DNA of 64,000 nucleotides from Klebsormidium nitens (GCA_000708835.1 DF236974.1:112626-176625), one strand, 5' to 3'. Positions 14,982 to 40,683 are shown, numbered from the stretch's first letter. Made by a program: numbers and translations. The notes: a model not told the origin generated them from the letters alone.

Positions 14982-17900
14982 TCAACCAAGGTAGACGGGT
15001 TTGACGGCTTTGCTTTTCTTGAGGTTGCAACCCACGGAACACTTGTACGGCGGCTTGGCCTGACCACTCAACCACTTTACGGAGCACTTGCGGCACAGGA
15101 GTGCGTGGCCGCAGGCAAAGTGATGGCGGACCGTGGTCTCGCTCCAATCGTCCATGCAACTGATGCACTCCCCGACCTGCACCCAAAAGAGAAAGTGTGT
15201 GAATTGCGGTAAAGTAACGTCGATCCGGGAAGATTGCCAGGCCTATCAGAGGATGATCCAGCGAACCTGAATTCTGGTATCGAGATGAAGAGGTATACTA
15301 CGGCGAGGTTGGATCAACGTCGCTCGTTATGTGGTGATGCAGAAGGCGGAACAGATAGAGCAAGATGGAAGGAAGAAGATGCAATAGGAGCGAAGAAAGT
15401 GATCGAAAACGCGAGCTCTGGGATGCTTGCTAGAGCGCTGCAGGAAGCGTCCATGTAACCTATAGGGCAGTGAGTTCCAATAACTAGCGGACATCTCCAA
15501 AACTGTGGTCTTCACTATATTCGACACCGCCTCGGTCTTCGCGTTCGTAGTCCGCGAGACATGCAACGCGTCCAATATGAGACCTGAACTTAAGCGTTCT
15601 TTACACGGAAGAAGGCCGCTCACCCCGCCGCCGTTTCGCTCCTTTTGCTCTAGTTCTTCCCACCTCTCCCGCAGGCGCTCCTTGTCTTTCTCAATGGCTG
15701 CTCTCTCTGCCGCAATCTGTTCTCGCAGCTCGCGTGTCTTTTCGTCCAAGCTGCGCTGGGCTTGCTCTTGCTCCCTGTACCAGTAACGGACGTGGATTGA
15801 GTTGAATAGAAGACTCGTAGATAGACAAAAACGGAGACACGTGAATGCACAGGAAGACCATTGAAAATTCGAGATTCTGGCCGCTCGCCCATCTTGATGG
15901 TCTTCCGGGACCATGACGGCGTATTCTGGTATATTGCAACCGGACCAGTGGAACGTCGAAGACAACAATCTGTAAAGGGAACGCGGAAGGGTTCCGAAGC
16001 AGGTTCTTTGGCAGCGCAATAAAAAGGCACCAGCACTGATGCTCGGCCACCGTTCACGATGAGAAGAAGGGATGACAGGTCGTTCCGTCAATGGTTTTGG
16101 CCCCACCTTTCAAGCTGCGCTTTGGCGGCTTCGAGATCGTGGCGCAATTTCGAAATGGACGCACTTTCTAGGCAGCAATCCGGCTTTTCCTGCGCCGGCT
16201 CGATGCTCGATGGCTTGGCCTCCGGACTGCAAACGAGATATCTTTACATGAGCACAGCGCCGCTCAAGGCAAGTGCTTCCAGCAGGCTTTCTCAAATATA
16301 TTCAAGGCCTCGATCGACTTCATAGTTTCGAAGACCCTCGCTACGCTGCCCTCGTTTCGATTGTTATGTTGAGCCAACATGTCCTACATTGAATGACAGA
16401 CTTTACTTTCGAAGGCCTTGTGCAGCACTGTGGTTCCCAAAAGCGTCTATATGCTGCCCTCATGTGGGTTGACGCGTTCAGTAAGTGTGGCACAACCAAT
16501 GTGAACGAGGAGATTTTACTGCATCGAGAAGAGCGATCAGGACTGCAGGCCAGCCCAAAGCCGTTGGGCTACTGTCGGCCCTTCCAATAAGCTTGTGACT
16601 CAAAAGCAACCGTCGTGTACAGAAGGTGAGATAGCTTGCCTGCCACTCTGCCAGTCCGCAGTGCTTTCGCTGGGCAACTGTTTGCAGACATGTCTCAGGT
16701 AAGGCGCCAGAGGGTCATAGCAGTCCGACAGCCCTTCAGTTTCCCCGCCCCGCGCTCCGCCTTCTTGCTCGACCCCGATCTCGCCTTTCGAAGCCCCTTC
16801 GCTGGCTGCAATCGTGGAAGCACTTCCAAAGACCGCCCGTGATACAAACTCCAGCCCGCTTTCCCCCTTTTCAGCGGTTTTGCTTGTTGTTTCCCTCGCC
16901 GTTTCCGGAGACACCTGAAGGCCCGGCCGAGTCAGATACGGGGCCACTTCGGAAGCCCCAGCCTCATTTTCAAACAGCCCCACAGTCATCATTTGCGGTC
17001 GTCCCACTCCCACTTCAACCAAACGCAGTGCTTTCTCAACCGGTCTCGGAGATCTTGTCTTCGCCTGCCTCATATCCGTCGCCCGCTTTTCCTGCCGCTA
17101 AGCAGCCTGCCACCGTCGACCGCTTGGCAGAACCGCCGTCTGCGGATTCCTTCCGCTGAGATGGACTAGCTGGCAAGCCGACTTTTGGGATGCTCGCCTC
17201 TGCTTCCGTTTGGCCCCCCTTGGCTTCCGGTGTCGCACCCGCCTTCCTCGGGACCGTTGCCGCAAAGACTGCCGCAAAGGCTGCCGCGACGGCGCCGGAA
17301 AGAGAACCCTCCGGAACGAAGCTCCCCGCTCGTCTCTTACGGAACACCTCTGTTATAGGCGCCGACCTACTTACCAAGCCTCGGCCCAGATCCGTTTCTT
17401 CTGGCATGTTTTCAACTTCCCGCAGCACCAGGCTCACAGAACCTAGCGCTGCTCGCTCTGCGCTTGCTCCCAGTGCTCCCTCCGCACCTTGTGCGGGCCC
17501 CTTATCCTTCGTAAAGTCGCCGAGCTCTGATAGAAGCTTAATCCCTTTCGGCTTCATGCCCGGCAACTCAGTATCCGCCTCTGGAAAAGCGCACGCCATG
17601 TCAACCTCACCGCTACACCCCTCCGCACGGGAATCGCCCGTGGTGCACGCTTAAGAACTCGGTCTAATGTGGTGACGTCAGCAGCCACTTCCACCGCAGA
17701 ACTCTCACCCTCCCCCGTTCCGTTTCGTTGGTTCTTGCAGGTCTCTCCATACATCGAGCACCCCAAGCCCATCACCTGTTGCCTTTTCGGCTCTGTCAGT
17801 ATCTCCCGCACTTCCCCTTTCCAAATCGCCACCTCTCGACTCCGCTTTCCCTCCACTCGCGACCGCGTTTCCGATCCCGTCTCGCGTCCTAAGCTCGCGG

Positions 17901-20900
17901 CCCGCCTTACCCTCCAGAGAGGCTTGACCCCTCCAATCGTGTCAGCCCGTTCTTGCAAAGACTCTCCTGCTGGATCGCCCGACGTTTCCGCTGCTGACGT
18001 GGCACTTGCCCGGCTAACGATTCCCCTGTTCACACCAGCTTGGGGCGGGTGAAGATCAACGGGCTTAGACATCGGCGGAGCGACGAAATTGCTCAAGCCC
18101 GGTCCTGCCACACTGGGCGGAGAAGCCGGGTCCCGCGCTGCAGCTTCGTCTTTCTGTACTACGGCGTCTTGGGGCGCCGCATCGAAACCGGGGGGATGAG
18201 CAGGCGGGATTGTGGGGAGGGAAGAGCCGCGCTGATTGAGCAGTGTGAGCAACTGGCCTGAGTCGGCGGCGAGGATCAGGGAGTGCAGGGGGCATGGGGG
18301 CAGCCAGCCGTCTGCATGATGCATCTGCAAGAACGATATCACACGGGCTTATGAGAAGTCGCACAGGTTTTAAGTCCAGCATCACGCTGCAAGGCTGGAA
18401 AACCTGAAGCAAAACAAACTCTACAAGGACTGATGTTCTGAGCGGAGGACCAGTAATCGAGCGAAAACGCAGACACGGATGCAAGTCCTTCGTCGGCAAG
18501 CCTCCTCTCGAAGCAACCGACACGGACTGCAGTTTCACCACACCGCAAGAGGTGACGCGATGGGCATGCCAGGTGTCGACTCATCCGCCTCGCTTGTCTC
18601 CGGCCCCTCGGGGGGACAAGATGCTGCAGCGCTAGTCTGCACTGCATTTTGAGCTTGGATGTCGACGATGTAATCCATCCTCCGCCGTCTTTCGAGAGAT
18701 GGAACACCTCGTCGGAACAATAGTCCCTGCGTTCAAGGGGCAGGAGTGTGGGCTGACCTCGAGGTGGGGGTACAGGTGGCCCCGCTCGAGCCAGATGCGC
18801 AGGTGCTGCAGCATAAACGGCCCCGCCTCAGTGCCGTCCGCTGCTTGGTACCGCCACGCGGCCGCCTCCTCTACCTGGACACCAGACGAAGTGGTTAAGG
18901 GGTTTTTCGAAGCTTTGGGGAAACTGATGTAGCCTTCATGCAACATGGAGATGTTGGAAATCGCATGCAGGAATGTGGACCGGCGTCAGAGGCGGGACTA
19001 CAAATAAAGCTTAGAAGGTAAAGGCTCAGCGACTTGAAACTAGTTCATAACCCAGTATCTAGCTGGGCTGTGGGATAGTCCAAGCGGTCTATTGAAGGTG
19101 AGCACTGCTTTATGTCTGTCCTAGCGCCGCAACCTGGCACATTAGGTCTAGCGCGAGCAATCTGACACACACTGCAGTACACGTCTGCTGCTCAAGAGAG
19201 GTCACGAGAACTCGAACCAGCCGACTCGCAACCGGTGTTAATCATTCAGTTCCCAACTTCCGCTCAACGCTCAATCAGCCGATGCTTACCTGCTCGTGCG
19301 TCATCCCCCCTGGCTGTGGCGGGGCCCCGCCTGTCTCTGCGAACTGCTGACTAGATTCCGGCGAAACTGCACCACCTTGCGGCGCGGGCTCCGCCTTCCG
19401 TTCACTTCCGCCGCTATCTTCGTCCCGTTTCTTTCCGCTGAATTCAATCCCTTCGTAATCCTCGCTTTGTCTGGTCAGCCCGATCTTCCTCTCGTGCGTC
19501 CTGCTGACAGCCCTCGTCACGCCAGTCGCATCACCCTTCGAATTCGCAGTGTCAACCTGCTCCCTCAGCAAATCATCTTGAGTGCTCGACACTCCCCAGA
19601 CCGCCCCAGCAGGTTGCGCCTTCCCCCCATCCTCTTGCTCGCCAGCGATCTTCGCAAAGCCCTGCGCTCCATTGCCGCCACTCTGCACCGCCCCATGCCC
19701 TCCAACTACAGCGTCCTTTTCGAGCAATCGCCCCACAGCTACCTCTAACGCACTCTTTGCCAGCAGCCCCTTCAGCCAGGCCCGCCCCGCGGGCCGCTCG
19801 CCCCCCTCGTTGACACTAGGGGCCTTCTCGCTTAACTCCAACCTGGCCCCGCCAGCCGCGGTGTCAATGCTTTGGTCGGCCAGGGCCACCAACCGACTGC
19901 CAGACGACGACAATCGCTTGAGAGGTACACGTAAGCCCTCCGGCCCCTCCGTTGCGCTGCCAGGCTTCGTCGCTCTTGACAAACTCTCTTGTGGTGACTG
20001 GGCAGACCGCCAAGGAGTTGACGCTACCTCCAGTCCGTCAGATGACACGTCGGCAACGCCCAAGCCGACTAGTTCACCGGCCACTCCATAGTCTGGCGCA
20101 TCCAGGTCCTCGACAGCCGCCGGGATCTCAGGCGTAGGGGAAGGCGGGGGTGACTGAAAGACAGTTTCGCGTTCTGGGGGGGCGCAGTTTGGAGAGAGGG
20201 ACGCGCTCTCTGATCGGGAGCGCGCAGACAGCCGCACATACCGGATCGCATTACCGGGTGAATTCCCGGTCCTCAAGTACTCCACCTCCTGCAGCAATAG
20301 ATGTCAAAATCAGAGCTTTTTTGAATCTTTTTCGAATCGCGTCTCCTGGGTTTCAATTCGTGTATCTGGGCCGCCGGATCTTGCTGTTGAAATGGGTGCC
20401 GTTTACACCACAAGCGAACGGGATTTGAGATGCGGTACAGAAGTTCGAGTCAGGCTTCGGGACGGTCCCAGTAACTAGTGCAGCAACTCGCAAAAAGATG
20501 GGCACCAACATTTGGAGAATTGCAGTTCAAGGGACATTCTTGGGTGATTGCAAAGTCTCTGCTTCCGAGGAAGCAAGGCAACGCACCTCTGATCGCGTCC
20601 AATGGTACCGCAGACAGTCTTCGGCTCGCCCTTCGCACTTTCCGGCAACATAATCAAGACAAAGGTATTTCGCAGCGATCTGCGGCGGCCTGTAGAAAAG
20701 CGCACGTGTCCGATGAGGCATGTTCGTACACCATCAAATCTGCGGATGAAGCTTCCTCCGACACTCAGCGATGCAAAGCGTCTTTTTCGGGACGACTGTT
20801 TCTATCACCAAAGAATCCATTGCAGATACTTAGGAACACATGAAGATAAGTGAGGACCTGCAGGAGTCAGCGATAAAGCCAGGAAAGCTTAGCAACTGGC

Positions 20901-23900
20901 CAACTAGTGGAAGACCATTGGCCACGTGCTCAGCACACCCACCTCGCCGGGTGTCTATACGGGCACCTCAGCTTTGAGCACCGCAGCCTCAAGAACATCT
21001 CGAAACAGACTCTGTCCTCGAGTTTTCGCCCCCGCTCGGCCTGCGACGACGGCCTCTCTGCGCAGTCCTTGATCTTCTTGCGCTCCTCGTTTTGTGGCTC
21101 GTCTCGCCGCTCCTCGTCAGTTTTCTCGTGCTTCCTCTTTCGACGTTCCTCCCCGTGGTCTCGACCCCCGTCCTTACGTGCATCCGGGTCTCGCTTCCGG
21201 TACCTATCTCGGTCCTTGTCCCGGTCCCTACCCCGTTCCCCCTCTTGGTCCTTGTCCCGGTCCCTACCCCGGTCTCTCTCTCGGTCCCTCTCGCGGTCCC
21301 AATCCTGGACCCCCTCTCGGTCCTTGTCTTGGTCCCTACCCTGGTCCCCCTTGCGGTCCCTCTCTTGGTCCCTCTTTCGGTCCCTCTCACGGTTCCTCTC
21401 CCGGCCCTCGTCTCGGTCCCGGCTGCGCTTGCGGTCGGTTTCCCTGTGACGGCTCCGCTTCCTGCGCTCCTCCGGGTCTCTTGCCGACTTTGCCTCCTTC
21501 TGACGCCGCAAGTTCTCTTCCCTCCGCCTCTTTCGCTCACTATCAGTCCCACCATCTCGGCTGCCCTCACGCTTTTCCCCACCCTTCAGCTCCCCCCTGC
21601 TTTCGGCCCCAGTAGCAACCGACCCCCCTGGAAAAATGTGACCTGGCTTTTCCCTGTTACTACTGGGCCCCGGAGCGTGCCCTGACAGCGGCCGCACATC
21701 CTTCCTCGTCTCCGCCCTAACTTTTTTGCCACTTTCCGTCTTGAGAGGCTCAAGTGGATGCACCGCCTCTGCCCCGAGCACTGGACCACTTTCGACGTTT
21801 GGCCTGGACATTGAACCAGGAGAATCCATCTCCCGGCTGCGCAGTCCAAGCGTGTCCACTCCGACCTTATTTCCAGCCCCAAAATCCCCATTTTCCACTT
21901 CCGCTGTCGCCTCGACAAAAATTTCGCCTTCCCCCCCTTGCCTGGGTATTGGCTTGGGCAGCCCAAAAGGTGACGTCAGCGCCACTCCGCTTGGACCGTC
22001 TTGCCCTTCCGTCCCGTCTGCGTCCGCTTTGCATTCTGTCGGACCCGCCTCTAGTTCCCCCCGTGCCTCTTCCGCTTGCCCGTTCCTCCAGCCTTGCTTC
22101 TCCTCTCCAGTCGCCACCGCCTCTATATCCGTTTCGATCTTTAAGCCCCACTCTCTCTCTGCTCTCAGCAGTAACATTCGCCGCATACTTTCAGAAAGGA
22201 GCCGTTCCTCTACACCAGCCGCTTCATCAAGCCCGTCAGCCTTGTGAGTTTCCTCCACCGCAGGTTCGGACGGACCGTCTTCCGCTCCAGGGCCCCCGTT
22301 TTCTTGGGCTGTTTGTGCTTCCCAGGCAAAAGTGGTGTTGAGCTGCAGCACACAGACCGGAAGTTTAGAACGGAACCCCCGGAATAAGACAAAACAGCGG
22401 CAGACGTCAATTAGGAATCTGGAGATCCGACCATTCGAGGAGTTGCCGCCTAGTGGGAGGTTCCCTGCATGGGGGTCCCACTGTTCTACAAGTCTCATGA
22501 TTACGCGTCTGCATTCGAGAAACCCCAAAACGTGGATTGAACGGCCTAGCACAATCAGCAAAAACTTCGCCTGCTTGGACTTTATGGAGACTACACTGAC
22601 CAGGGCCACATACTCGGATGGTAGGCGGCAGATTGCAGATACATACGGGCTACCGAGAAGGAGTTTGTAGACATTCTTTTCTACCGCCAGGTTTGAGGAG
22701 ACAGCTAGCAAGGTGGCTGACGTGACTAAAGGGACAGCCACATACACACATTTGTGCTCATTCAAAGTCAGCAACTCACAAAAGCTTCCAAAGAGCCTGT
22801 AGTTTGTGATCCCTGTGCTGCATCCCATAATGGCTGACAACATGGCTGCTTGAGTGATTCTAACTGCTCACCTGTTCACTCCGCTCGTCCGGGTTGCCCA
22901 CAAGAAGCTGTCCTAGTTGCGCGCAGTCCAAGTCACAGTCTGGCTGCACACAGCCCTGCATGCACAATTGCCCCAACTGAATCTCTGATACAAAATGATG
23001 TACACTTACAGGACTTTCCAATGACTGTCGGGGCTCTCGACTTCAGGCTTGACAATAACTTGAAACCTTATGTGCATCATATGAAGTCATGTGCCTTGTT
23101 CTTGACGCAACCTTCTGATCTCAGAAGACTTCAAGTTCGAAAGCACAAGGCACCATATCATTCTGGCAGAACGCAGTTTGGCAAGATGAGCCAACAGTGT
23201 CACTGAGAACAACTCTGCCTGTTCTTGTGCTCACGCTTCGCAAGCTTAGACACATTTGTGACTTGCCCCACGAGTGACCTCACCTGCGACAGCCTGCACC
23301 GCTGAAGAACTGCGAACGGGCTGTTGGAGGCTCCATCAACCCGCCATTGTTCGTGAAACTTCAAAAGTTTATCCACCAGATTCTGGCGTTCGGCCCCGCA
23401 ACTATTCCCCTCAGGTATGCCATCGTTGGGATGCGTACGCCAACTGCTTTCGCCCTCAATACTGGCCAACACTGGTTCCTCAAGAGGGACCTGCGGGGGC
23501 CAAAAAAGGAAAACTTATGAGGACGCTCGCTTTCTGCAGGATTATCAGGTGGAGCTCAGCCGATCCAAGGAGGAAGAGAAGCTGTATTCTTCTGACATTC
23601 GTCAAGCAAGGAGACAGTGGCCCAAAGGATTGTTGTTGTCCCCTATGCTATCAGAAGCACAGCAGATTGACTGCAGTGGCTCATGCAGACCATAATGAAA
23701 GAAACAAAAAGTGAATTTCCCAGGCTCCAAGGATGAGTCAAAAAGAAGCCCCCATCTCTGCACTGGCTAGCCAGCCCTCAGTGTGCCCCCAAAAGTAGTC
23801 TCAGTGACTGCTGAAAGGCCCATAAACCATAAGCCCTGCTGGGATGCACACTGAAGGTGTCTAGTTAAACTGCCCCTCAGAGAAAACTCGTGAAGTGCCA

Positions 23901-24340
23901 CTGACTAAGATGCAAGTGTTCATTTTATTTCTCTCCCAATGCTGCCAGGTGGGGAGCAGGCAAGGAGATACTTCAATCACGCTGTCTGCAAGGATGAAGT
24001 GGCTGCTTTTCTACCAAAAACAGCCATGATGCTGTATTGTATGCCCATGTCTTCTGCCTTCAAACAGCTTTTTCTTCCTGAAAGTGGGCCCTCACCAACC
24101 CCCATATGTTGCATTAACGCGCCCCAGTGCCCCTTTCAATGCAGTTTCCTCTTCTCTTCAGAGAGAACAAGAAGCACTGAAGACAAAAGGTCCGCTTGAC
24201 AAAAATCTTCACCTTCCGCATGTCTGCCGCCTCTGTGTTTGACTCTTCCATTGGCCGCAACACTACATTCAGCATCTTGATTGCATGCCCCTCTGATTGC
24301 ATTTCTTCAGCTGCGATCAGCGAAAGTGAATCAGCATTGG
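14982..24340 (-). CDS. Large (>1600 aa) multidomain protein: RD/RE mixed-charge tract, two CCCH zinc fingers, GYF-like domain, disordered linkers, coiled coil, C-terminal RING-HC; 5' end unresolved
   Basis: Phase-compatible exons ~24340-24213, 23490-23235, 22984-22872, 22342-20943, 20689-20587, 20288-19290, 18874-18758, 18324-17709, 17580-~17070, ~16915-16640, 16226-16107, 15774-15624, 15176-14982. CCCH1 CFEMFLRLRCSKLRCPYRH; CCCH2 CLDYVAGKCEGRAEDCLRYH; GYF-like WRYQAADGTEAGPFMLQHLRIWLERGHLYPHLE|MHHADGW; RING CISC..CGHALLCRKC..CSVGC. The junction near 17070-16915 is not securely resolved, so two genes cannot be excluded. Confidence 0.7.
21180..21480 (-). repeat. Coding low-complexity repeat (cggtccct-like units) encoding an Arg-Asp/Arg-Glu tract
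   Basis: Translates RDRDKDQEGERGRDRDKDRDR...; explains the many overlapping open frames at 21.0-21.7 kb. Confidence 0.85.
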
Positions 24341-24968
24341 CTGAGAAGACCTCCACGTGGCTCCGTGAAGCAACTCGAGGTGTCCCTCCACTGGCATGGG
24401 TTTTCGACCAATAATCCAACCAATTTGAGAGCCACATTGTGAGGCTGTTCGAAGGCGTCAAGGTTCTTGCAGCATTGCGGCATTGGACTGTTGCAGCAGC
24501 ACAGCAGACTGCAGTGCGAGTTCTTCGAGCTGCTTTCTGAAGGTTTTCACCCCAAAGGTTGCCCGGTGTCAGTCTCTTCCTGACTCTCAGTGATTGTGTT
24601 GCAGCCTCACCTTTCGCACTTTTACTTGACACTACCGGCTGCCTCAGCTTCCTTGACACGAGCTGAGCACTTCAGTTCAACTTCCAAGTCCTCAACAGAG
24701 GGCAGGGCGTCTGCTCGGCCGGCCAGCAAGCTCGAAAGTCCTTCCTTCAGCTGAACAGATGGTGGATCACCAGCCTCGCCCCTTGTATCAGATTTCCCCA
24801 GCTCAAGCAACCAAACGCACCACTACAAATCTATTTTTAGCGCTCTCAGGATAAGCGTGTATACTGCAGGTTTACAGCGTGGTGTGATTGCTTGAACCTT
24901 GCCTGAGCACAATATCCATGCAACACACATAAACAGACTCAGCGATGAGGTGGTGGTCAGAGCGATGG

Positions 24969-27900: not shown

Positions 27901-30332
27901 AGATTGGCCAGCGGGACCGCTGGAGGTTGTCCACGTTTTCAGAGGATCTCGTGTCCGCAGACTTCTCAGTCGTCTGGAAATGAGGCCAGAGTTCAGGGTG
28001 GTGAGCATTTTGAGAAAGGCGACATGAATCTTGCTTTTTCGGTGCGTCGAGCATTCTGAAAAGGGCAACACGAAACGTCCTTCGTTGTGCCAAGTACTGA
28101 TTTAAATGACGACAGTAAAGCGCGAATGTTTCCTGCGTTTCCTACTACCAACGTACTGGCCTGCGATGGTCCCATAGACTCTCAGCACAACGACGAAGGT
28201 GCACAGCATACACTTTTTCCAGCACAGACATAGTTTTCAAGGCCCAAAAGTCACACGGTCTCTCTATTTCGATGCCTCAAAGCAGTCAAAAGCTTGTTCT
28301 TTTCGTCCCCAGGCTGGCGTACTACTCTGTGCTGGTGGAACCGTGGGGATGCTCCTAATCGAGCTGCTCCACGGCGTCACGTTCGGCGACAAAACTCACG
28401 CCTCTCTCTTTTGACGCCTCAGAGCAATCGGATGAATAAAAATTTGCGCCCACTTTTCTCTCAGACTGGCGTACTATTCGGTGCTGGTGGAGCCGTGGGC
28501 GGTGCTCCCGATCGACCTGCTGCACGGAGTCACGTTCGGGGACAAACTCACGCCTCTCTCTTTTAACGCCTCAGAGCAATCCGATCAAACCATTTCGCGC
28601 CCATTTTATCGTCTCAGGCTGGCGTACTATTCGGTGCTGGTGGAGCCGTGGGCGGTGCTCCCCATTGAGCTGCTCCACGGCGTCACGTTCGGCTGCGGCT
28701 GGACCGCGGGGACCGTGCACGCCGGCAGGATCGCGCCCCCGGGGATGGCGGCCACCATGCAGGTTAGCCGGTGTCACATTTCGTCGATCCTATGTCAAAC
28801 GGTTGGCGGTTAATGGTTATCTACTTGAAATATTGTCACCCTCAAAAACCTGAGATCCTTAGATTCTTTACTGAAAGTCGAGATGAGAGCAACTTTTTTT
28901 CTGCCACGGTGCGGAAGCGTGCAAAACCCGGCGAAATTGTCTGGTTGAATTGTCTGGTTGGCGGCCGCCATGTGTCGGCTCTGACTACCCTTGCTGGACC
29001 CTTCTTTGACGAGTAGTGGTTTGTCTGATAACCTGCCACCCAGATGAGCGCCAGATTTGGGTAGTCCGAAATTCATCTCTCCCTGGAAAGCCGAGGAGTT
29101 GGGATGAAGGAAGCTTGAGGAGTTTAGTCAGCAGCTTTTGCCAATGTACGACTTCAAATTATGGAATCGGCGGTTGATAGGCTTTCCGTTGTTTTCCCGC
29201 GCTCAGCTGTACGGCGTTCCCGCTTGAGCGAGCGCGCTGAGGCGCATATTGCGGCGCGCAAAGCTTCTCGCCGCTGGTTTGGTCATTTTCACTCTTGTTC
29301 TCATCTCCAACAGCAGTCGGCTCCGTGCCTCCTGATTTGAAAGGGGAGAAGCTCTCTCGCAGCCGCGCCTCTTAATCGGACAGGCTGTTGCGCTGAACGT
29401 CGCTCCTGATCACGTCATCGTGACGTCATCCTTCTCTGCTCGCACAGGCTCTTTTCGCTGGCGCGTACTCCGGCATCGGCGATGGGCTCGGCATGCTGCT
29501 GGGAGGGTTTGTGTACGAGCACTACGGGTCCGGTGAGTTCGCCCCCGCCCCGCAACACCTGATTCTTATGTTGACCTCCCATTTCCGTTCCGTTTCCGTT
29601 TACCCTTTTCACGTGTTTCTCCAAACCCATCTTAAAACCCCTGTATCCTGTCCTTTTCCGAATCTTCTTACGATTGTCGATTCTTCTGCCCTTGTCCTTT
29701 CCCAAATTCTCTTACGACTGTCGTTTCCCCTTTCCTTTTGGTTGTCTAGGTGGACTAAAGGTCGAGCGAAAAGGATTTGCAATGCTCAACTTTCTCATTT
29801 TCTTGCCATGGCGCCCTCGGAAAGGGCTTCTCGTTGTAGCACTGAGTCTTGGCAAACGCGTTGCTCTACATCACCTCACCGTGTCGCCGTCCGGCGTCGT
29901 TGATTCCTATTCGACGTGTTCTCACTTCGTCTCGTCGGGTTTTCCGCACCACCGTTGCTTGAAACTCGGTCTGACGCTTGAAGTCTGACACAACTTACGG
30001 CGGTGGTTCTTTTCGTCGCCGAAGAACGAGATTTGAATGCAATCTTGCGTCAGCGCTGAATCTGTTTGAGGCATGCGGAGCCTGTGCCGAGGCCGTCGCC
30101 TTTTTGTCTTTCCCTATCCTTGAAACACTGCAGCGTAGACAACCTGATGCTTCTCCCCCTTTTTGCAGTGACTCTGTTTCGGGGGTGCGGATTGCTGGTC
30201 GCGGGGGGCGCGCTGCTCTTTGGGCTGTCCCAGCGGTGGTTCCCCCTGGAAGACGGCGCCAGCGGAACGGATCGGGAGGGGGAACAAGAGCAAGAACTCG
30301 TTCCGCTGGAAAAGCCCGAGAGCGAGGCCTGA
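24969..30332 (+). CDS. Major facilitator superfamily transporter, MFSD6/MFS_1_like type, ~553 aa, 7 exons
   Basis: Exons 24969-25062, 25754-25878, 26273-26555, 27132-27897, 28618-28762, 29448-29532, 30169-30332 with matching phases. Motifs LLPYKLYYLALFSGLACMSPFLP, GLTESQIG, YGKQRLWGAVGWG, AEVPMMWFSGRLIKRLG, PWAVLPIELLHGVTFG; long P/S-rich central loop. Confidence 0.9.
28250..28690 (+). repeat. Three tandem ~152-153 bp copies of intron end + acceptor + 5' half of MFS exon 5
   Basis: cag|(g/a)ctggcgtacta...cacgttcgg begins at 28313, 28465 and 28618. Only the third copy continues into the rest of the exon. Confidence 0.92.
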
Positions 30333-31604
30333 TTCAGCTATGGAGGAGCTTCTCGAACCAAGCCTTTTCGAAGGACTGTTCCTATTGATCCGGCAAAGGT
30401 ATCCGGTAGCGACTGGGTATCTTTGACGTCGAAAGCGAAAGATGCATACGTCCGATTGGGGCAATCTGCGGCAATAGACAGAACAGCGAGCACTGATCCC
30501 GAGAGCTTTGATATGGAGCTTGAAATATCATAATGCACGCAAAGATTGTGTACAGATTTGAGAGACACTTCTGGAGCGGTACATTCTTTTTAAACTTCAA
30601 CGGAGCGATGCACCGATCAGTAGCCCTAGTGCCTTGTGCATCTGAACGGGCAGAGACAGGCATTTCCCTAGCTTGAGCTGTACGTTGAGAGCGTAGTAAC
30701 ACCTTGCTGCATGACCAGCGCACGTAAGCGAACATGACCAGCGCACGTCTGCTTCAATTGCTGCAGTAACCGAGGATTTGAGGAACATGTGTTCAGCGCG
30801 CATGTCTATGTTGATGACAGCTCTTGTTCTACACGTAAGCTGCAAGAGTCAACTTTAGCAAGACGACGATCGAATTGTATACTCTTCGGACGGAAATCTT
30901 TGGCGGTCTCCGTCCGAAAGTGTTGTAATGTAATTGGTGTTGACGTGTTGATCATGCTTCAAAGCTCCATGTGGGTGCGGCCATACATGTGCTAGGTCTG
31001 ATTCTGGATCGATTTTGTTGGAGGTGTGCGTGGAGCCAAATGCCGGGCTTTGATACGCGTTCCATAAATGATGAACAGACAGTCATTAGCTGAAATCTTG
31101 TTGGAAGCCCCCAACTTTAATTGTCACATGGTACCTCGGGTGGCGGGCCCATCGGATCGATCGGACTACGCCTGCGCAGAAATCAGAGCCTGAGCCTGCC
31201 CGATGGCCAAGCTCTCCACATGTCGCCAAAAGCTACTCACGTGCACTTCCATTGAGCGCCGTGTCGGCCGCCAAACGTCACCTCTGTATTGATCGTCAAA
31301 CCTTCACGTGTTCACTCGATTTCCAACTAGAGACGAGTCAAATATTGCCGCAGATTCAAGCCAGCAGTTCGTAAGGCCGGCTTGTCATGATTCTTCACCG
31401 TCTAAATTTGCGAATATAGTGCTACGTCCACGCTTCACAGAGGCCCAGTGAGTGGGCACTAGGGGCGTTTATGTGTCATTGCTTACTGCACATGCTGATT
31501 ATGCGCGCAGAGCTTACAGATCAGTGCAACTAAGTAACCGTGTCGCGGCCATGCGGCGGAAAGTGATCCACCTAGATGGTCTCGGGACGCTGAGCACAAA
31601 CTCG

Positions 31605-33375
31605 TGGCCAATGACAGCCAGATGAATCTCGACTTGAGCTCAGGGCAATTGCAGATTCGGACCGTCTTGCAATCTTCCAGATAGAACGTCTGCAGCAAAA
31701 GTCTCGCGGCGGGTTTGCACCGCGCTTTGAAGACCTCCGCGCTTCTTGGCGGTATTCTTCCGGGGCGCGCGCTGATCGTTGGTCCTCCGTGCACGGCATG
31801 TTCAGCTTCGAAGCCTCGCATCGAAGCCGTCAGATGGAGGCCACGTGGCGCGATCAACGGCGCGAAGTAGTCGTGTAAGAATTCTAAACACCCACAAAGG
31901 ACTCAAATACGCTCTGCCTACATAAGCCAGGATCCTGCCTCCTTTCTTTCAGTGGATCGATCTGGGGCGCCCCCCGGTCCAGAGGCAGGAACCTCTGTCC
32001 AGGGGTGTTCCACGGAACTCCCCCGGAAACCCAATAAACAACACCAAATTGAAGCCAAACACACACCAAACTCCATCCATCTCCGAGTGCCTTACAATTC
32101 CAAACAAACCCCAACATCCTTGCCACCAACTTCTTCAAACGAACATCATTTCTGCCATCACACGACAATAGTTAGGCTCCGAATATTAAATGTGAGTCTG
32201 CTTTTGAACGAAGATTGAAACTTGTTCTCAAGCATGGGCCTGGCGTGCAACAATCTTGCGTTTGTTCAAAAACGTGTCGTCTTCCGTGATGATCTCCAAC
32301 AGCGTCATGTGGACGTCGTTTCGTGAATATCTTGAAGCGTCCCATTCCAGCCCATCATAGATCATTGTTAGGAGAGGGATGCTTGTACGTTTAGGCATTG
32401 CTATGCAGATCTGTAATTATTGCACGGTATTGTTTTGTTCAGAACCTTCTTTGTACCGGAAACCCACCGGAAAGCCATGGATGCATCATCCTGACGACGT
32501 TTCAAAAACATTCAAATAAGCTTCTAAGATCCATGCATAGAGGCGCCTGATCCCTGACTCTGTCCCGTCTTGTCACGCATACAACAAATCCAATCAAAAG
32601 TGAGAGCTTTTAGTCACGATTTTTTGATAGCCCCAATTCTCTATGACTTGGATACTGGCTTTGAACAATCCCACTTGCTTGACGGTATACTCATCCAGCC
32701 AAAAGCATCAATTGCTTTCAAAGGGACTCAAAGGTAGATTGCAACCATAGAGACTCCGGTCTCGTGCGGTAGAATTGACGACGACTGCACATAAGGTAGC
32801 TTTGTGGTCTGATTATAAGATGGATTGCATGCTCGATGGAATTCTTAAGTGGGTCGGTGGTTTAATGGTGGAGTGAATGCTTACTGGAAAATATGGGATT
32901 AATGTTTGTGAGAGTGTAGGTGGCTGTGCTGGATTTATCGAGAAAGAGGTTTCCGGGGGAGCCCAATAGGGCACCCCTGGACAGAGGTCCTGCCCCTGGG
33001 GCCGGGGGGCGCCCCGGAACGATCCACTGAAAGACTAAAAGGTCGGATGCTGGCTTATATGTGCGCTGCGTGTCCCCATCCTTTATGGGCGAAAGACAAA
33101 GACTCAGAAACGACTGTGGCCGTTTGATGGTGCCACGTGGCGTCCATCTAACGGCCTCGATCAAAAGACGTCCGAGATGGACGAGCGCGCAAAACTGGAC
33201 CGACGCGCGCCACAGAAGAAGCCGTCCGAAACGGTCAAAATGGCCCCCATTTAGGATCTTGCATACAAACTTCTTTGAAGACATTCAAGGAACTCGAAGG
33301 GAGGTTCTGATACAAACAAAGATGTAAACGGGACATCTTAAACAGATTGCGGGACTGTACATGGCCATCAGTCCT
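31605..33375. mobile_element. Degenerate long-terminal-inverted-repeat (foldback/MULE-like) element with a decayed coding spacer
   Basis: 31820-32030 matches the reverse complement of 32950-33160 (e.g. tctttcagtggatcg..ggggcgcccccc, cctctgtccaggggtg, ctcccccggaaacc, gccacgtggc). Weaker similarity extends to ~31605/33375. Termini and TSD not identified. Confidence 0.65.
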
Positions 33376-33476
33376 AGTCAAAGAGAAGAACCAGGAGGTT
33401 GACGTGTCCTAGCTATCTGCTTCTTAGGTTCTGAACGCCTAGACTTTTGTCCGTATCCATAAACTCTTACAAGATG

Positions 33477-34474
33477 CACAGGGAGGATTGGTCGTCTCCT
33501 CCCGGGGGGGAGAAGAGGGGGAGAACCGGAGGAGACATGTCTCCCCACCTGTCTCCCCCACTTCTCCCCGGGGGGAGGAGAACCGTCACTCTCCACCCCC
33601 TCTACCCCAGTGGAGGAGAATTCTCCCCCCATGATTCTCCCCCACTCCAGAAATGCTTCGCTTCTTCAAAAGTGCTTGGAGATTGTAAATACACGGACCG
33701 GGGTATGCTTGTTGAGTCCAACATGAACGGTTCTGAGTGCTCAAACCGAAAAAAAAATGGTTTCCTGCAAAAATCTACCGCTTGTCACCTGCCGGGCTCG
33801 AACCGGTGTCCTTCTGCTATTAGGTCTGCCTCCTTAACCACCTGTGCTATCTCATATGTGTGCACTCCAGAGGGGCAGCTTAAAACATATATACAGTATC
33901 ACAGAAACCATTTTCGAGATTTCCTGGTTTGCAGAGCGCTTTACGCCTCCGTAAGTCCGTTGTTCATCTTCAGAGGTTCTTCGGAAACTATATTGAAGCA
34001 CCTTTGGTATTTTCCACCTGTTTTGATCCGTTTGACATCAAGGAAACAGCCTTGCTGAGAATTCGCCGATGAAGAATTAGACAAGTGTAACATGAATGAG
34101 CGATGCAACTTTAAGGCAGATTTGTTGCTTCTAAGTAGATGGTCAGAGGACAGTACTAGATCCTTATACATCCTTTGATCATTTGTTATTCTTTAGATTC
34201 TTGTTAGATTAGCGATCGAAAGTTGCCTTCGTTTGGAGGACAGGGGGAGATCAGGGGGAGAATACTCTCCCCCTCTCGGAAAAGTGAGGGGGGAATTCTC
34301 CCCCCGTCCTCGACTGGGGGAGACATTCTCCCCCACAGTCGTCAGGTGGACGAGACCGTTCTCCGCCCCTCATGTGGGGGAGACTTCTCCCCCACCGGAG
34401 GAGAATGTAGTCTCCCCCCCCGGGGGGGAGAGAGGGGGGGGAGGAAGGGGGGGAGAAAACCAATTCTCTATGTG
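33477..34474. mobile_element. 998-bp non-autonomous DNA transposon, CACTA/CMC-like
   Basis: Termini CACAGGGAGGATTGGTCGTCTCC and (reverse complement) CACATAGAGAATTGGTTTTCTCC. 3-bp direct repeat ATG at 33474-76 and 34475-77. About seven subterminal palindromes GG(G/A)GAGA-n-TCTCCCC in 33520-33640 and 34250-34420. No transposase ORF. Confidence 0.75.
33784..33856 (-). pseudogene. tRNA-derived relic (A box, B box and T-arm kept; acceptor and anticodon stems broken)
   Basis: Minus strand TAGCACAGGTGGTTAAGG...CCGGTTCGAGCCCGG followed by T5 (33773-69) and T9 (33757-49). Not a functional tRNA by my folding. Confidence 0.5.
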
Positions 34475-34639
34475 ATGCACTGTCTTCGCTCTTTCCCTTC
34501 AAGCCTGACTGATAGACCGCCTATTAAACAGCTTCTCACTCGTCTCGAGAACTCTCACCGTGGCCTGAAAAGCCCTACCCTGTCCGCCCATGCGAACGAC
34601 GAGAGAAGCAAGTTCTTCGCTATCAAAACCAAGTATTGA

Positions 34640-35535
34640 CCTATATCCACTCACGTACGGTCTTCGACGCCCAAGCATTTTCCCGACACTCCGTTCCACT
34701 GCTCCCCCTCCTCGTCGAACGTGATCCGGAGGTTCTGGGCGATCACGATCGGGGGCAGCACGGGTCTGAAATGCTCGCCAGGTTCTCCCCGAGCCTCTCC
34801 CCCGAAATCTCTGCCTTCAGCTCAATCAGCGCGCGCGCGTAGGCCAAGTGGGCAGCTGTGTACGCGCCGCTCGTCGTCGTCTCGGCGTGGCGGATGAGCG
34901 CGTCGAGGTGCGGGTACGCGCGCCGCGCGCTGCGGCCGGAGGTGCACACCGCGCACAAGTACCGTCCCCCGGGCGGCTTCGCGTGCCCGGTTCTTGACTG
35001 AAATTCCTGCTCCAGCCTGAGCTTCTCCTCCAGTTGCATGCTGACGTCATTTGCCCCCTGAAAACCTTCCGGCTGGGACGAAGCGTCGCGTAACATTGGC
35101 CTGCGCTCTAGCCCTTCTGTGCGGGGACTTCCGATGACGTCATCTTCCACGCTGCCAGCGTCGACTTCCGTTCCCCCACTGGCTTCGCTCATGCGCTCGT
35201 CTCCCGAGTCTTGGTGGCCGCCGTCCACGAATTCGAAAGCTTCTCCACAAACTAGTTCCCTTTTGGGCGGCATCTGATCCACTCCGGTGCTGCGTTCCAC
35301 GTCTTTCAAAGAGGCGGTTCAAATCGCCCGGAAAAAGCAGCCGCAGAAGCGATTTAAATTCTTTTCCGAAGTCTCAAGAGACGCTTCTTTCCCTTACCCC
35401 TCAGGCGCAACCAGAGTCTCAGCTCCTGCTGCAATTGGCGTCACCTGCTTGGATGATTTGCGCAAGACGGGAGCTTCAATCCAGTCAATCTTGAAGACGA
35501 CGGATGCATCTGAAGATTCACATCTTCAAGTCTTT
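34640..35535 (-). pseudogene. Truncated inverted duplicate of the 5' part of the SGS3-like gene (N-terminus, zf-XS, first ~30 aa of XS)
   Basis: ORF 35309-34743 contains ASSQPEGFQGANDVSMQ and RTGHAKPPGGRYLCAVCTSGRSARRAYPHLDALIRHAETTTSG, versus the near-identical text in ORF 36183. After a frameshift it reads PPIVIAQNLRITFDEEGEQWNGVSGK and then breaks off. Carries internal deletions. Nucleotide similarity traceable to ~35535, pairing with ~36040. Confidence 0.9.
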
Positions 35536-35770
35536 AAATGTGAGTGGACGTTGTAGCTTTTTCCGGCGAGACGAGCAGAGTGCTTTCTCGGTTGACGTCA
35601 TCTGTTGGCCGACTGCGATGTTGCTGACGATTCCTGGTTGCATGCAGCGATTCTTGTCGTTGTACGTGTCCATCGGGACATGTATCGTACCTGGACTGCG
35701 CGCACACCAGATATTCATGCTGCTTAAGTTCTACCGGGGCGAAGGTTCACTGCATAACTCAGGATGTCGC

Positions 35771-35780
35771 TATATATAAA
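35771..35780. promoter_or_regulatory. Candidate TATA box in the ~500-bp spacer between the SGS3-like gene and its inverted copy
   Basis: TATATATAAA, roughly central in the unique spacer; the TATATATA core is symmetric. No transcript evidence. Confidence 0.4.
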
Positions 35781-36182
35781 CCTTCCGTACTTAAGTCATG
35801 CATCGTAAGGCAATCTAAATTTCGCTGGCAGATTGAGGTCTTCGCCCGGCTTAAGCGGACTGACGAAGCTGCCACGTCCTGCATGCTGCATTATCGAGAT
35901 CAGGTTAACCGGTGCAAAGTTGTCAGCGTTACATTACGGGAGCCTACTCCGTGGACAGGAAAGGAAACGCTCGTCATCCAGCGCACGAGACTTGAAGGCC
36001 TTCCTTTCATCCGGTGTTAAGAACTGAAAGCAACTTCAAAGACATGAAGCTGGGACCTGAAGTTGCATTCGCCTCTTTCAGACTCTGTCGAAGCTCCCGT
36101 CTTCCATTGGCTCTTACAATCTTCAGTTCAGGGGGTATAACAGAAGTCGTTATCAAAGCAGAAGCGTAGGGAAAGCAGAGGA

Positions 36183-39100
36183 ATGGGGGAAGGTTCAGGT
36201 TTCTTCTTGGAACCAGGAAGTCAGATTGTGGCTGCGGCTGAGGGTTCCGGGAACGAGGAGCCTCTCGAGATCATGGAACTAGACCTGAATATCGCCCCTG
36301 ATGAGGCTTTCTCCGAACAGTCGCAAGCCCCTTCTTTCAGACATGAGGACCACGCCATTAAGGTGGAGCAAATGCCTTTTAGACCGCTACCAACGTGTGA
36401 AGAAGAACTCTCAGAAGACCAGCGGGACTCCGGGGACGAGGTTAAGAACGAAAACAACGGGCAGGAAAAGATCGGAACCGGCAGGGTGAACGATGGGGAC
36501 ATCGGAGGCCCGCGCCCTGAAAGCTTAGCTTGCAACGGTATCTGCCCCGGCGCTTCTTCGCAGCCGGAAAGGTTTCAGGGCGCAAATGACGTCAGCATGC
36601 AGGTGGAGGCTCCAAAGCCAACCGCCTCACCAGCCTTCGGTCAGGTCACCGACTCGTCCACCGACTTTTCTCTCTTTCCTGAGGAAGACGTAGACAGCTC
36701 AAACTCGGAGGGCTCGGTGGAAGACGACGAGGCACCGGGGCAAGGTAATTCGTACCAGTACTGGGCGGAAAAGCTGGAGCGGGAGTGTGCGACAAGAACT
36801 GGGCACGCGAAGCCGCCCGGGGGAACGTACGGGTGCGCGGTTTGCACCTCTGGCCGCGGCGCGCGGCGCGCGTTCCCGCACCTCGACGCGCTCGTGCGCC
36901 ACGCCGAGACGACGACGAGCGGCGCGCGCGCGGCCGCCCACGTGGCCTACGCGCGCGCGCTGAACGAGCTGAAGGCGAGGCTGTCGGGAGAGAAGCCCGG
37001 GAAGCAGCTGGCGCGGCTCTCTGGCCCGGAAAAGATCGTGAAGCCCCCGATCGTGATCGCCCAGAACTTGCGAACCAAGTTCGACGAGGAGAGGAAGCAG
37101 TGGAACGGAGTGTCGGGGAAAGTGCTCGGGGCGTCCCTCCGGGCAAAAGGGTACGATGTAAAAGACCGGAACGTGAAGGATCTTTGGAACGCCGGGGGCC
37201 ACCGGGGCACCGCTTTTATTCTCTTCGAGGCGACCGAGAGGGGGCTGCTCTGCGCGAAGCAGCTCGCGGAGAGCCAGGAGCAGCGCGGCCGCGGCCGCGT
37301 CGCGTGGGAGCACGCGCGGGCGGCCGGGGCGCGGCCGCGCGAGGAGGACGGCTCGCCGCTCGCGTTCTGTTACCTCGCGACGGCCGACGATATGCGCGCG
37401 CTCGACCCGCGCGCGAAGTCGACCGGGTGGGAGGAAATCGAGCTGCAAACGCTGCTGAAGAATTCTGTACGGGAGAGGGACCAACGGCAGGAACTAGAGC
37501 TGCGGCACGCGAAGGCGCAGAGCGAGCTGCGGGCGGCGGAGGGGAAGAATCGGGAACTAGAGGGAGAGAAAATGGACCTGGCGCGGCAGAACGAGGCGCT
37601 CAGAGGGGAGGTCGAGGCGATCCGTGCGGCAACGGAAGCGGAAAATCAGGCGCACGCGCAGGAGGTGAGATGAGTCGGTGACACCTTATGGGCGTTAGGA
37701 AGCAACGGGTCCCCGGAAATTGGAGATGTTTTGCTAGATCTGAAGGGAAGATTTTACTTCGATGAGATTCCTGATGGGTCCGGAATGCGGAGTACTTCAA
37801 ACAGCATGTCATGAAAGTCTTTTGTGCTGCTCAACCTATTCCGAATCCTGAAGTTGTCGAGCCCAATTTTATAAACGGCTAGATGTTGATCTGAACGGCT
37901 CGAAACCCAGTTTGGTACGTTTTAATGCTGTGCTCCTGCCGCTGCTTGTTTGAAAGCATACATGGACAAGGACAAGCAAATCTTTGTGGTGGAAATTTGA
38001 CGACACGCTAGATTCTAGACGGGCGGACGAATAGACGGGACGGGCGCTGAGTTCAATCGTCTAAAAGCTTGTAGGAGACATAACGTTTCTTGCTGAATGC
38101 GGATTCTGTGGAAGAATAGAAAAACCTTGGTCAGTGTCATCTTTTGGGTTTGAATTTAGTTAATGCAAATGCAGTCTTGACGGGCATTCTGCAGCTACAA
38201 ACACGGTCGTTCTCAGTCGAAACTTCTTCAAATCACCGAGGCCTCCTGATTGACGTGCGCCACGTGTCTCTGTCGGGTCCAGATGCTCCGCCAGGTGGAG
38301 GAGCTGCAGGGCGCGCTCGCGGAGGAGGCGCTCGAAGCGAAGGCGGCCGCGGACGCGGATCGCGCCGACATGAGCCGACGACTGCGGGAGCTCCAGCCGG
38401 GCGGTCAGGAATCCAAGATAGACGAGGCAGGAGACTTCGACAGGTAAGTCTTCGCGGCAACTAAGCCATGCGCATGAATCTGGTTGTGTCATTCAACAAG
38501 CCTTTTCTTTGCGTCATTGCATGAATTCGGCTTAAGCCAGACGAAGAGCATTTTCACTTGATGAGAATGTCTGTGAGCAAGCGGATAGCGGGCAGCTTGC
38601 TCAAATGTTCTCATTTCTGGACTGTTCTGGCAGAGGCGCCTTTCGATCTCAAGTCGTTTTATTGGGACGTTCATCTGATGGATTTTGGAGGGAAGATGCA
38701 GTTTTTAAACTCCTCCAGTCATCGCTGTCCCGCTGGCTCGCACGTCATAATCCGTTGACCAGATGCACTTGCGGCTCGCATCGGCAAGCACTGAATTCGT
38801 TGCCTTCTGCTAAAGGTCTTGTCCCGTATTCGACAAAGCTTCAAGAACTATTCTGCTCATCACCATCACTATGTTCCCAAACCCTAAGCAAACCTTCAGT
38901 AACACATCCGCTTGCGAAAGAGTGCACCTAAGCACAACGCAAAACCAGCTTTTATGCATGGCGACGACCGCTCCCTTCGGTGACGTGCAGTGCCCACGAG
39001 CAGCTGTCAAAGATAGTTGAGGACAGCTTTCAGAAGCTGGACATCGCATACAACGACCAGGAAGTCGCCTCGTTCGTCAGCCTGCGGAGCGCCTTTGATC

Positions 39101-40683
39101 AGACCAGAGTGCAGATGCGAAGGTAAGGCTCCGGGCCGTGCTCGTCGCTGATGTTCAACACGATTCCCGAGCTGGTTCTCTTTAAATTCCTTGCTTGGCT
39201 TCTTCAATTGGACCTTGAGTTGAATCTTTGTTGACCAAGGAACGGTTCAAGAGCGGGTGGTATTCGCTAAAAGAGCATCAGCTGACTTCGAGGTACAATC
39301 TACATGGGCAGGGGTGGATCTCTCTCGATCTGTATGTCGAGAACTCCTCAGGGCTAATCCCCTTTGAGCAAGCTATACTTCTGGCTTTCCGGTTCCCTGT
39401 CAATGCAGGGACTGAGATTCCGGCGGAATCCATTGGTCTTTTTGTCTACGCCTTTTGCCCTGCTTTTGCTCTTTACGCGACGTGGGGGTTCAGATTAATC
39501 CATTTCCAAGTTTTGCAAACTGCAGTGACTTTAGCAACAAGCAAGGGTTTTCGCAACGGAAGACTTTCTGACTAGTCTGAAAACGCATCCGCTTCTTGGC
39601 TCTTTGCAGGGTGCGCGAGGAGAACCGCCGCGCGGTTATGAGGGAATTCGAGCAGAAGCTGCGCGAGGTGGCGGAGCAGGCTGTGCGCGCGCGCGCGGAG
39701 AGCGAGCGGCTTCGGGAGGAGCGGAACGAACTAGACAACCGGAGGAACCAGCAAGGGGTGAGCGGAGGGCACGATCAGTAACCGAAGATGCGCGTCTGGA
39801 GTCTCTTAGGTTAACCGTCTGACCCGACTCGAATCTGTGGTCCGAGATGTTGCTAGGCCTTCGTTGTCCGAGAATAGTCCCAGCCTAGGTCGCGTTCCAG
39901 GTAGGCATGGTCTTGGTTCTGAAGAATTGATTTCTGTTCCAATGTCGAGATTTGCTTCGAACAGAAGTGCGGGTGCTTTCAAGCTTTGTCCAACGAAACC
40001 TTGAATATCCCACGAGAGTGTTGTTTCCGTCAGTCGAGACGCCAGCTGAGGTTTGATCTTCAGCCTAGAAATCATCAAACCATTGAGCTTGATCATGGTC
40101 TGCGACGTGCGCACATGATCAGTAGACAACATTTTTCGGAAAGGTAGGGAAGGTATGAAAGCGGACCGCGCTCCTTTGAGAGCTGCTGAGGCCGGGACGT
40201 TGGCACGTTTTAAACGACAGGGATCCCGAGGTAGACCCCGCGCGTTTGACATAGGAGTTTTGGCTGCTAACTAGGCCGATCACCAGATTCAAGGCTCATC
40301 TTTGACCTTGTTATAAGGCTGGCGACCGCCCGACTCTGGTTATCGAACATAGCACTCTCCAACGGTCAACCTGCCCTTAATGGCCCATACCATCCATAAT
40401 TATGGGCCAGAGCATCCTATCAATGTCGCCCGACCGACGAAGCTTTCGTGTGCAGGCGCCCGAGTGCATCGTGTGCTCCGAGGAGTGGAGCGACAGCGTC
40501 AAGCGGTTCCAGTTCGACTGCGGGCACGCGGTCATCTGCGAGAAATGCTGCGAGAAGTATATCGCGACAGAGGAGGCCAAAATGGGCAAAACTCGCGGCC
40601 GGAAGCAGCACAAGCTCATGTGTCCCATGGGCACCTGCGACCTCCGAAAGAACAAGAGGTTCAAGCCCGCATACCTGGGATGA
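36183..40683 (+). CDS. SGS3-like protein: acidic disordered N-terminus, zf-XS, XS domain, coiled coil, C-terminal RING-HC; ~716 aa, 5 exons
   Basis: Exons 36183-37664, 38283-38443, 38991-39122, 39610-39757, 40456-40683 (phases 0,2,2,0). zf-XS CAVC..H..H. XS motifs IVKPPIVIAQN, WNGVSGKVL, GGHRGTAFILFE, GRVAW, FCYLATADDM parallel SGS3 IVWPPMVIIMN, WLGMGNQEL, GHRGMSVLMFE, DRIAW, YGFLATKQDL. RING CIVC..CGHAVICEKC..CPMGTC. No XH domain seen. Confidence 0.88.

Follow-up and report, generated by a model that had tools for sequence, protein, structure and literature searches.

What does it mean when two genes with unrelated preceding exons end in the same pair of exons? The question is raised by a stretch of 64,000 nucleotides (hereafter, the window) of Klebsormidium nitens scaffold DF236974.1 (assembly GCA_000708835.1), in which a gene with CCCH and GYF domains on the minus strand (gene A) and a gene with an XS domain on the plus strand (gene B) are each followed by a coiled-coil exon and a terminal RING exon. 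In the first-pass annotation, exon shuffling was proposed to have appended one E3 ubiquitin ligase module to two RNA-recognition platforms. We favor, with moderate confidence in the explanation as a whole, a different reading. The cassette would be the conserved 3' gene structure (phase-2 intron, coiled-coil exon, phase-0 intron, terminal RING exon) of a small family restricted to Klebsormidium, cassette A would encode a separate product, and the module would be a helix-RING ligase.

The exon layout first described for both genes, with a phase-2 acceptor, a coiled-coil exon of ~150 nucleotides and a phase-0 RING exon, is seen in both cassettes. Cassette A comprises a coiled-coil exon of 151 nucleotides (15624-15774, minus strand) and a terminal exon (14982-15176, minus strand) of 64 codons plus stop, which encodes a C3HC4 RING with all eight ligands intact and ends in KPVYLG-stop. 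In cassette B, the coiled-coil exon has 148 nucleotides (39610-39757, plus strand) and the RING exon (40456-40683, plus strand) has 75 codons plus stop, ending in KPAYLG-stop. The two RING peptides previously quoted lie where they had been placed on their respective strands, at 15176-14985 with the stop at 14984-14982 for A and at 40456-40680 with the stop at 40681-40683 for B. Both coiled-coil exons follow a phase-2 acceptor ending in CAG, their first base completing (as base three) a split AGG codon, and both end at a codon boundary with the donor GGG/GTGAGCGG (the slash marks the exon-intron border here and below). Both RING exons start in phase 0 after GTGCAG.

Homology searches used single-exon references or database proteins. 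The two RINGs align with 38% identity (E value of 1e-17) and the coiled-coil exons with 39% identity (E value of 7e-4), the latter being weak evidence given the charged helical sequence. Thus, the same cassette does occur twice, as proposed, and on their sequences the RINGs are true paralogues. No alignment was obtained between the introns and flanks of the two cassettes, which argues that the copies are old, and no third copy was found in the window. Moreover, the exons that precede the cassettes (38991-39122 in gene B and 16226-16107 in gene A) show no similarity to each other, so that the homology is confined to the two-exon cassette.

The proteome-wide search suggested earlier for the RING exon was performed by building a profile from both RING exons and comparing it with 1.84 billion representative proteins (E ≤ 1e-3). 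Only eight proteins matched, all from Klebsormidium. Four belong to K. nitens: GAQ79151.1 (gene B), GAQ79147.1 (cassette A), GAQ86940.1 (191 amino acids) and GAQ89463.1 (147 amino acids, a stand-alone coiled coil-RING), and the remaining matches are fragments from JGI, ENA and Logan assemblies. In the phylogeny, the RINGs of the window and their orthologues form one clade with 100/99 support, whose members end in K/RPxYLG-stop, and the other four sequences form a second RING clade ending mostly in ELYL-stop or ELFL-stop. RINGs A and B thus resemble each other more than they resemble generic RINGs. A word search with residues 590-716 of GAQ79151.1 returned only the query itself, and scans of metagenome loci with the RING A exon and with the first CCCH exon found nothing.

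The exon structures recur among the family genes. GAQ86940.1 is encoded by exons of 48, 179, 130 and 219 nucleotides, with a helical 130-nucleotide exon running from phase 2 to phase 0 before a RING exon that starts in phase 0, and GAQ89463.1 by exons of 189 and 255 nucleotides, again with a phase-0 start of the RING exon. A phase-0 intron precedes the RING in all four K. nitens genes, and the full structure is common to A, B and the GAQ86940.1 gene. Because of this recurrence, the cassette is best regarded as the ordinary gene structure of the RING family. In addition, GAQ86940.1 starts 102 nucleotides after an annotated XS-domain gene of 148 amino acids on the same strand (DF237271.1; locus L007, 1845-6140). 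A canonical intron at 3296-3814 of this locus (ACA/GTAAGC ... TTCTGCAG) could join the XS frame in phase 2 to an extension of the first exon of GAQ86940.1 that is open on the upstream side. Judging from this arrangement, the annotation has probably divided a second XS-coiled coil-RING gene into these two, and XS-coiled coil-RING looks like the core architecture of the family.

The clearest member of this architecture is gene B. A chain of five exons built by hand, with intron phases 0, 2, 2 and 0, is identical residue for residue to GenBank GAQ79151.1 (716 amino acids), annotated as "XS domain-containing protein", its first exon being 100% identical. This exon (36183-37664, plus strand) encodes the N-terminal region, a CxxC..H..H motif visible N-terminal to the XS domain, the XS domain itself (Pfam PF03468, residues 283-405, 58.7 bits against a cutoff of 25) and the start of the coiled coil. 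Neither zf-XS (PF03470) nor an XH domain is reported by Pfam for GAQ79151.1 at E ≤ 0.1. The coiled coil continues in exon 2 (38283-38443, plus strand, 161 nucleotides, phase 0 to 2), followed by exon 3 (38991-39122, plus strand, 132 nucleotides, phase 2 to 2) and the cassette. In a related Klebsormidium (JGI metagenome contig Ga0590114_0002347, loci L002 and L004), the exon order of gene B is kept on one strand: an XS exon with 62% identity is followed by exon 2 (conserved in L004), exon 3, a coiled-coil exon (L004, 17518-17720) ending in GDG/VSG with a donor of the GTGAGCGG type, and the RING exon. The claim that the XS gene ends in the cassette thus agrees with GAQ79151.1 and with the relative, and gene B is, with high confidence, an in-frame fusion of XS domain, coiled coil and RING. 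The support for its junctions consists of annotation, phase consistency and exon conservation across species, which limits this confidence. The Logan contig L005 (SRR14092360) is collinear with genomic DNA and stops short of the downstream exons, and gives no evidence of gene B splicing. This contig also joins position ~4818 to ~12998 of L004, omitting 8.2 kb upstream of the XS gene, either because a long 5' intron lies there or because the strains differ in structure. As a separate observation, the gene B RING of the relative (L002, 10001-10204; P0007 and P0012) is present as two alleles or strains, one with Cys2 changed to Arg (CIFR) and the other intact (CIFC).

Regarding the identity of the module, the eight zinc ligands follow the order C-C-C-H-C-C-C-C, with distances that suit a cross-brace. 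The ligands of RING A are spaced C-x2-C-x14-C-x-H-x3-C-x2-C-x14-C-x3-C, and RING B has the same pattern but with x24 and a C-x4-C final pair. The zinc ligands are invariant in the alignment of eight sequences, except for single-allele losses in the relative. Compared with solved RINGs, the family profile matches RNF4 (E value of 8.7e-6) and TRIM32 (E value of 4.4e-5) over ligands 1-6. The AlphaFold model of residues 592-716 of GAQ79151.1 (mean predicted local distance difference test score of 84.9, but only 58-78 in the 30 C-terminal residues) has a helix of 47 residues (2-48 of the model) followed by a small RING-like zinc-finger domain. The 20 best Foldseek matches of this model are all RINGs, with IDOL, RNF4, RNF8, TRIM32 and Bre1 at the top and probabilities up to 0.98. 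On this basis, the module was filed as a divergent RING-HC, whose closest functional counterparts are predicted to be dimeric RINGs preceded by a coiled coil. Several points weigh against this assignment: no RING family of Pfam reaches its gathering threshold (at best 20-22 bits for zf-C3HC4_3, zf-RING_2 and zf-C3HC4, with cutoffs of 21-27.3), the Foldseek E values are weak (~0.05-0.15), and E3 activity, dimerization, a function for the C-terminal Tyr/Phe and binding of RNA through the XS domain are predictions.

If the assignment holds, the mechanism would resemble that of known enzymes. RNF8, Bre1, IDOL/MYLIP, RNF4 and TRIM32 likewise have a helix and then a C-terminal C3HC4 RING, the Klebsormidium side of this comparison being taken from the model. 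For example, the Foldseek alignment of RNF8 to the gene B model spans 120 columns and includes the helix. By analogy with RNF8, Bre1, IDOL and RNF4, the helix would dimerize the C-terminal RING, which would recruit E2~ubiquitin. The tails of dimeric RINGs carry an aromatic residue near the C terminus, and the Klebsormidium RINGs have a conserved aromatic 2-3 residues from the end (Y-L-G-stop or Y/F-L-stop), which may help in this recruitment across the dimer. The CGH-x3-C-x2-C spacing also matches zf-C3HC4_3, the best Pfam match. However, the final two ligands are spaced C-x3-C or C-x4-C instead of the C-x2-C of dimeric RING E3s, from which the Klebsormidium RINGs also differ by an insert of 14-30 residues before Cys7. 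In gene B, the XS domain would bring the putative ligase to RNA or to RNA-protein complexes.

Does cassette A likewise terminate the CCCH/GYF protein? This was addressed in the contig sets of public runs (30-44 Mb). These sets contain ~55-60% of the sampled words of 14900-20899, and their records do not state whether RNA or DNA was assembled. Four of them, from four studies, were compared with the window. Such contigs may merge overlapping transcripts and drop minor isoforms, and hence can neither establish that there is one mRNA nor show that a spliced form is absent. One contig in each of the four runs carries the joints 15176/15624, 15774/16107, 16226/16640, 18324/18758, 18874/19290 and 20288/20587, which correspond, from the RING side, to introns of 447, 332, 413, 433, 415 and 298 nucleotides. 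The longest contig has 5694 nucleotides and reaches the exon ending in KLRCPYRHPA. Hence, the check that the RING exons are spliced to upstream exons gave a positive answer for gene A, and cassette A is expressed and spliced as it had been drawn, sharing a contig with the GYF and CCCH exons.

The exons of gene A, all on the minus strand, are as follows. The RING exon is preceded by the phase-0 intron of 447 nucleotides at 15177-15623, by the coiled-coil exon with its phase-0 donor, and by an exon of 120 nucleotides (16107-16226, phase 2 to 2) that is part of GAQ79147.1. A GC-AG intron (16227-16639, donor GCAAGC) separates the latter from a long exon of 1685 nucleotides (16640-18324), unspliced in the contigs. 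Upstream of it lie the GYF-domain exon (18758-18874, 117 nucleotides, phase 0), a low-complexity exon of the CCCH/GYF open reading frame (ORF) (19290-20288, 999 nucleotides) and the second CCCH-finger exon (20587-20691, 105 nucleotides), with the first CCCH ending near 20945. In exon-by-exon Pfam searches, in which introns split the domains, the GYF exon scores 19.6 bits (cutoff 25.7) and the CCCH exons 13-17 bits for zf-CCCH_12, _10 and _2 (cutoffs 26-27). Apart from the main contigs, low-depth contigs (~4 compared with 48, or ~9% of the main ones) cover the coiled coil-RING intron at 15177-15611 on the minus strand in each of the runs, pointing to retention of this intron at roughly 10% or to pre-mRNA.

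Sharing a contig is not sharing a frame. The exons of 105, 999 and 117 nucleotides are each open and divisible by three in length, which fixes the frame that enters the long exon at 18324. This GYF frame meets a TGA at 17556-17554 and has six in-frame stops (17556, 17445, 17436, 17373, 17355 and 17100). Frame +2 is open over 17653-17039, with the annotated stop at 17038-17036, and the RING frame reopens at 17097, with an annotated ATG at 16992, so that these open frames overlap by 59 nucleotides (17097-17039). An assembly indel as the cause of these frame changes was ruled out, because 16640-18324 is contiguous in all four runs with zero differences and zero indels relative to the window. In GenBank, the region is divided into a product of 1386 amino acids (24302-17036), terminated by the frame +2 stop, and the 272-amino-acid GAQ79147.1 (KFL_000250240) over 16992-14982, 44 nucleotides after the upstream gene. 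The statement that the cassette terminates the CCCH/GYF protein therefore holds for the spliced contig but is not supported for the protein, given the six stops, the unspliced long exon and the two annotated genes.

As the CCCH/GYF frame is discontinuous with the RING frame in the contigs and in the annotation, the product of cassette A is most likely a separate coiled coil-RING protein of 272-299 amino acids, a conclusion that we regard as more probable than its rivals, with considerable room for doubt. It would be made from a shorter overlapping mRNA starting inside the long exon. Over 272 codons and three verified junctions, no stop interrupts the ORF of GAQ79147.1, and none of the eight zinc ligands is missing, so it is probably translated. 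Nonetheless, some observations count against this reading. Frame +2 is open for 205 codons where ~7.7 stops are expected from composition (P ~5e-4, an estimate), and a coding-like pattern is seen in this frame over 17650-17375, so that another frame looks coding across part of the long exon. The annotated 1386-amino-acid model appears to use an intron such as the candidate X described below, absent from the contigs. The gap of 44 nucleotides is too short for a normal intergenic region. Also, the contigs carry neither a depth profile nor ends, and the separate short mRNA of GAQ79147.1 and its start are inferred.

These observations can be read in other ways. One is that the CCCH/GYF protein truly ends in the cassette, the translated isoform losing two introns from the long exon: X at 17708-17581 (128 nucleotides, GG/GTGAGA ... 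TTTTCCAG) and Y at 17374-~17065 (310 nucleotides, TTG/GTAAGT ... GGCAG). X has a good donor (GG/GTGAGA) and a good acceptor (GCGCTTTTCCAG), and the donor of Y is perfect and falls exactly at a codon boundary of frame +2. Removal of both takes out 438 nucleotides (146 codons) and restores a single ORF. Coding potential leaves frame 0 for frame +2 near 17650 and returns to frame 0 near 17050, and both parts of gene A are on one contig. In addition, an mRNA with a stop ahead of three spliced introns is expected to undergo nonsense-mediated decay, yet this one assembles at full length in four studies. However, the joints of X and Y appear in the contigs of none of the four runs, whereas all six other introns are joined. 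Their composition is exon-like (T 0.15-0.23 and GC 0.59-0.63, compared with T 0.25-0.29 and GC ~0.50 in verified introns), and the candidate acceptors of Y are purine-rich. Besides, GenBank annotates two genes instead of a fusion, and the cassette of the relative has no GYF/CCCH gene within 12 kb upstream. A CCCH/GYF-RING fusion was accordingly ranked below the separate product and is unlikely. Slightly less likely still is the special case in which X and Y are mostly retained introns of the "exitron" type, whose regulated removal would switch the CCCH/GYF protein between RING-less and RING forms.

The stops lying between cassette A and the upstream ORF would also be expected if the cassette were a decaying, untranslated remnant of an old inverted duplicate, its exons now forming the spliced 3' untranslated region of the CCCH/GYF transcript. 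The corresponding cassette of the relative has an in-frame TAA in the coiled-coil exon and a Cys7 to Ser change in the RING, the K. nitens RING A branch is long (0.9 compared with 0.16), and a partial inverted XS duplicate persists at 34666-35426. Against decay, the 272-codon ORF is open across three verified junctions, with the eight zinc ligands and the KPVYLG tail intact. At a stop probability of ~3.5-4% per codon, 272 open codons would be very unlikely without selection, and we consider this remnant improbable, about as much as the exitron. Much less probable than any of these is a single long mRNA with two or three cistrons, the RING ORF being reached by termination-reinitiation or frameshifting. 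The contigs are contiguous over both ORFs, the upstream stop lies 44 nucleotides ahead of an ATG ATG at 16992, and the open frames overlap, as would suit such a mechanism. But eukaryotic reinitiation is not expected after an ORF of ~4 kb, no slippery site or structure was seen (no search for these was made), and overlapping separate transcripts account for the contig more simply. Thus, translation of cassette A as a separate coiled coil-RING protein is retained here as the preferred reading.

How did the cassette come to lie behind gene A? In the related Klebsormidium (Ga0590114_0002347), an inverted cassette, A', is found 12 kb upstream of the XS gene, with the same position and orientation relative to this gene as K. 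nitens cassette A, and A groups with A' with 83/85 support. No exon resembling those of GYF, CCCH or MFS-transporter genes was found in the 12 kb between A' and the XS gene. A' (L004, 585-2090, minus strand) bears its in-frame TAA 10 codons before a GGG/GTGAGT donor and, from its sequence, is probably a pseudogene. In K. nitens, an inverted partial duplicate of the 5' half of gene B (34666-35426, minus strand, residues 12-317, 43-74% identity) overlaps an annotated gene of 247 amino acids at 34251-35273 and is head to head with gene B. Separately, repeated short ORF motifs (GGEFSP... and SPPLLPGG...) occur on both strands at 33400-34500, between an MFS transporter gene and the XS duplicate, and may be a repeat or a transposon remnant.

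Judging from sequence comparison, cassette A probably arose long ago when the 3' end of an XS-coiled coil-RING gene was duplicated locally in inverted orientation. In the simplest history, such a gene would have been copied in whole or in part, and a subsequent rearrangement in K. nitens would have left the remaining 3' cassette directly downstream of the CCCH/GYF gene. As for exon shuffling, A, B and the GAQ86940.1 gene do have their phases in common, and the preceding exons are unrelated. However, XS genes account for two of the three hosts, no in-frame join links the cassette to the third, and in the relative, too, the cassette lies inverted next to the XS gene. A local inverted duplication fits better, because the exon structure is ordinary for the family and the inverted position is conserved. 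In the same way, the idea of two RNA-recognition platforms equipped with one E3 module is kept for the XS domain (in GAQ79151.1 and probably at the GAQ86940.1 locus), but is not supported for CCCH/GYF, whose frame does not run on into that of the RING in the contigs or the annotation.

Finally, the combination can be compared with known RNA-associated proteins. RNA-binding RING ligases are a well known class, and MEX3C, Roquin, MKRN and CNOT4 share with the Klebsormidium proteins the concept of combining RNA binding and a RING in a single polypeptide. The RING of MEX3C gives a weak match to the family profile (E value of 0.22). Unlike in these enzymes, the RNA-binding domain in Klebsormidium is XS, and the RING belongs to a distinct subfamily, with no other K. 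nitens RING at an E value of 1e-3. On the XS side, gene B resembles SGS3, IDN2 and FDM in having an XS domain and then a long coiled coil, and its nearest Atlas clusters are SGS3/XS clusters, which is taken as a lead only. It differs from these proteins in the presence of a C-terminal RING and in the XH and zf-XS domains, undetected by Pfam. A word search with the XS region of GAQ79151.1 (residues 215-420) returned Klebsormidium proteins only, with no land-plant relatives, and the SGS3-like protein of K. nitens has been named as GAQ92898 (PMC5907777). For this reason, the description of gene B as SGS3-like does not hold in the sense of orthology, and gene B would be a divergent XS paralogue. 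Nor is the XS-RING architecture unprecedented, since one sentence of the same work (PMC5907777) mentions XP_002979112 of Selaginella moellendorffii, an XS protein whose C terminus carries a RING. This protein is absent from the eight matches of the RING profile, and its RING is probably outside the Klebsormidium subfamily. The full-text searches made here returned no functional study of an XS-RING ligase, and this Selaginella sentence was the one mention of the architecture.

These results bear on the K. nitens v1 gene models, in which adjacent gene pairs 44 and 102 nucleotides apart are probable errors or open questions. The gene A locus offers a clean case of a duplicated 3' module co-transcribed with a neighbor and not yet fused to it. 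Should the exitron reading prove true, CCCH/GYF would be a second, unrelated RNA-binding platform that is conditionally armed with this E3 cassette. Moreover, if ligase activity is present in the XS-coiled coil-RING proteins, Klebsormidium would couple an RNA-binding domain of the SGS3 type directly to ubiquitination, and the XS-RING combination could show how protein turnover was linked in early streptophytes to the silencing or the quality control of RNA.

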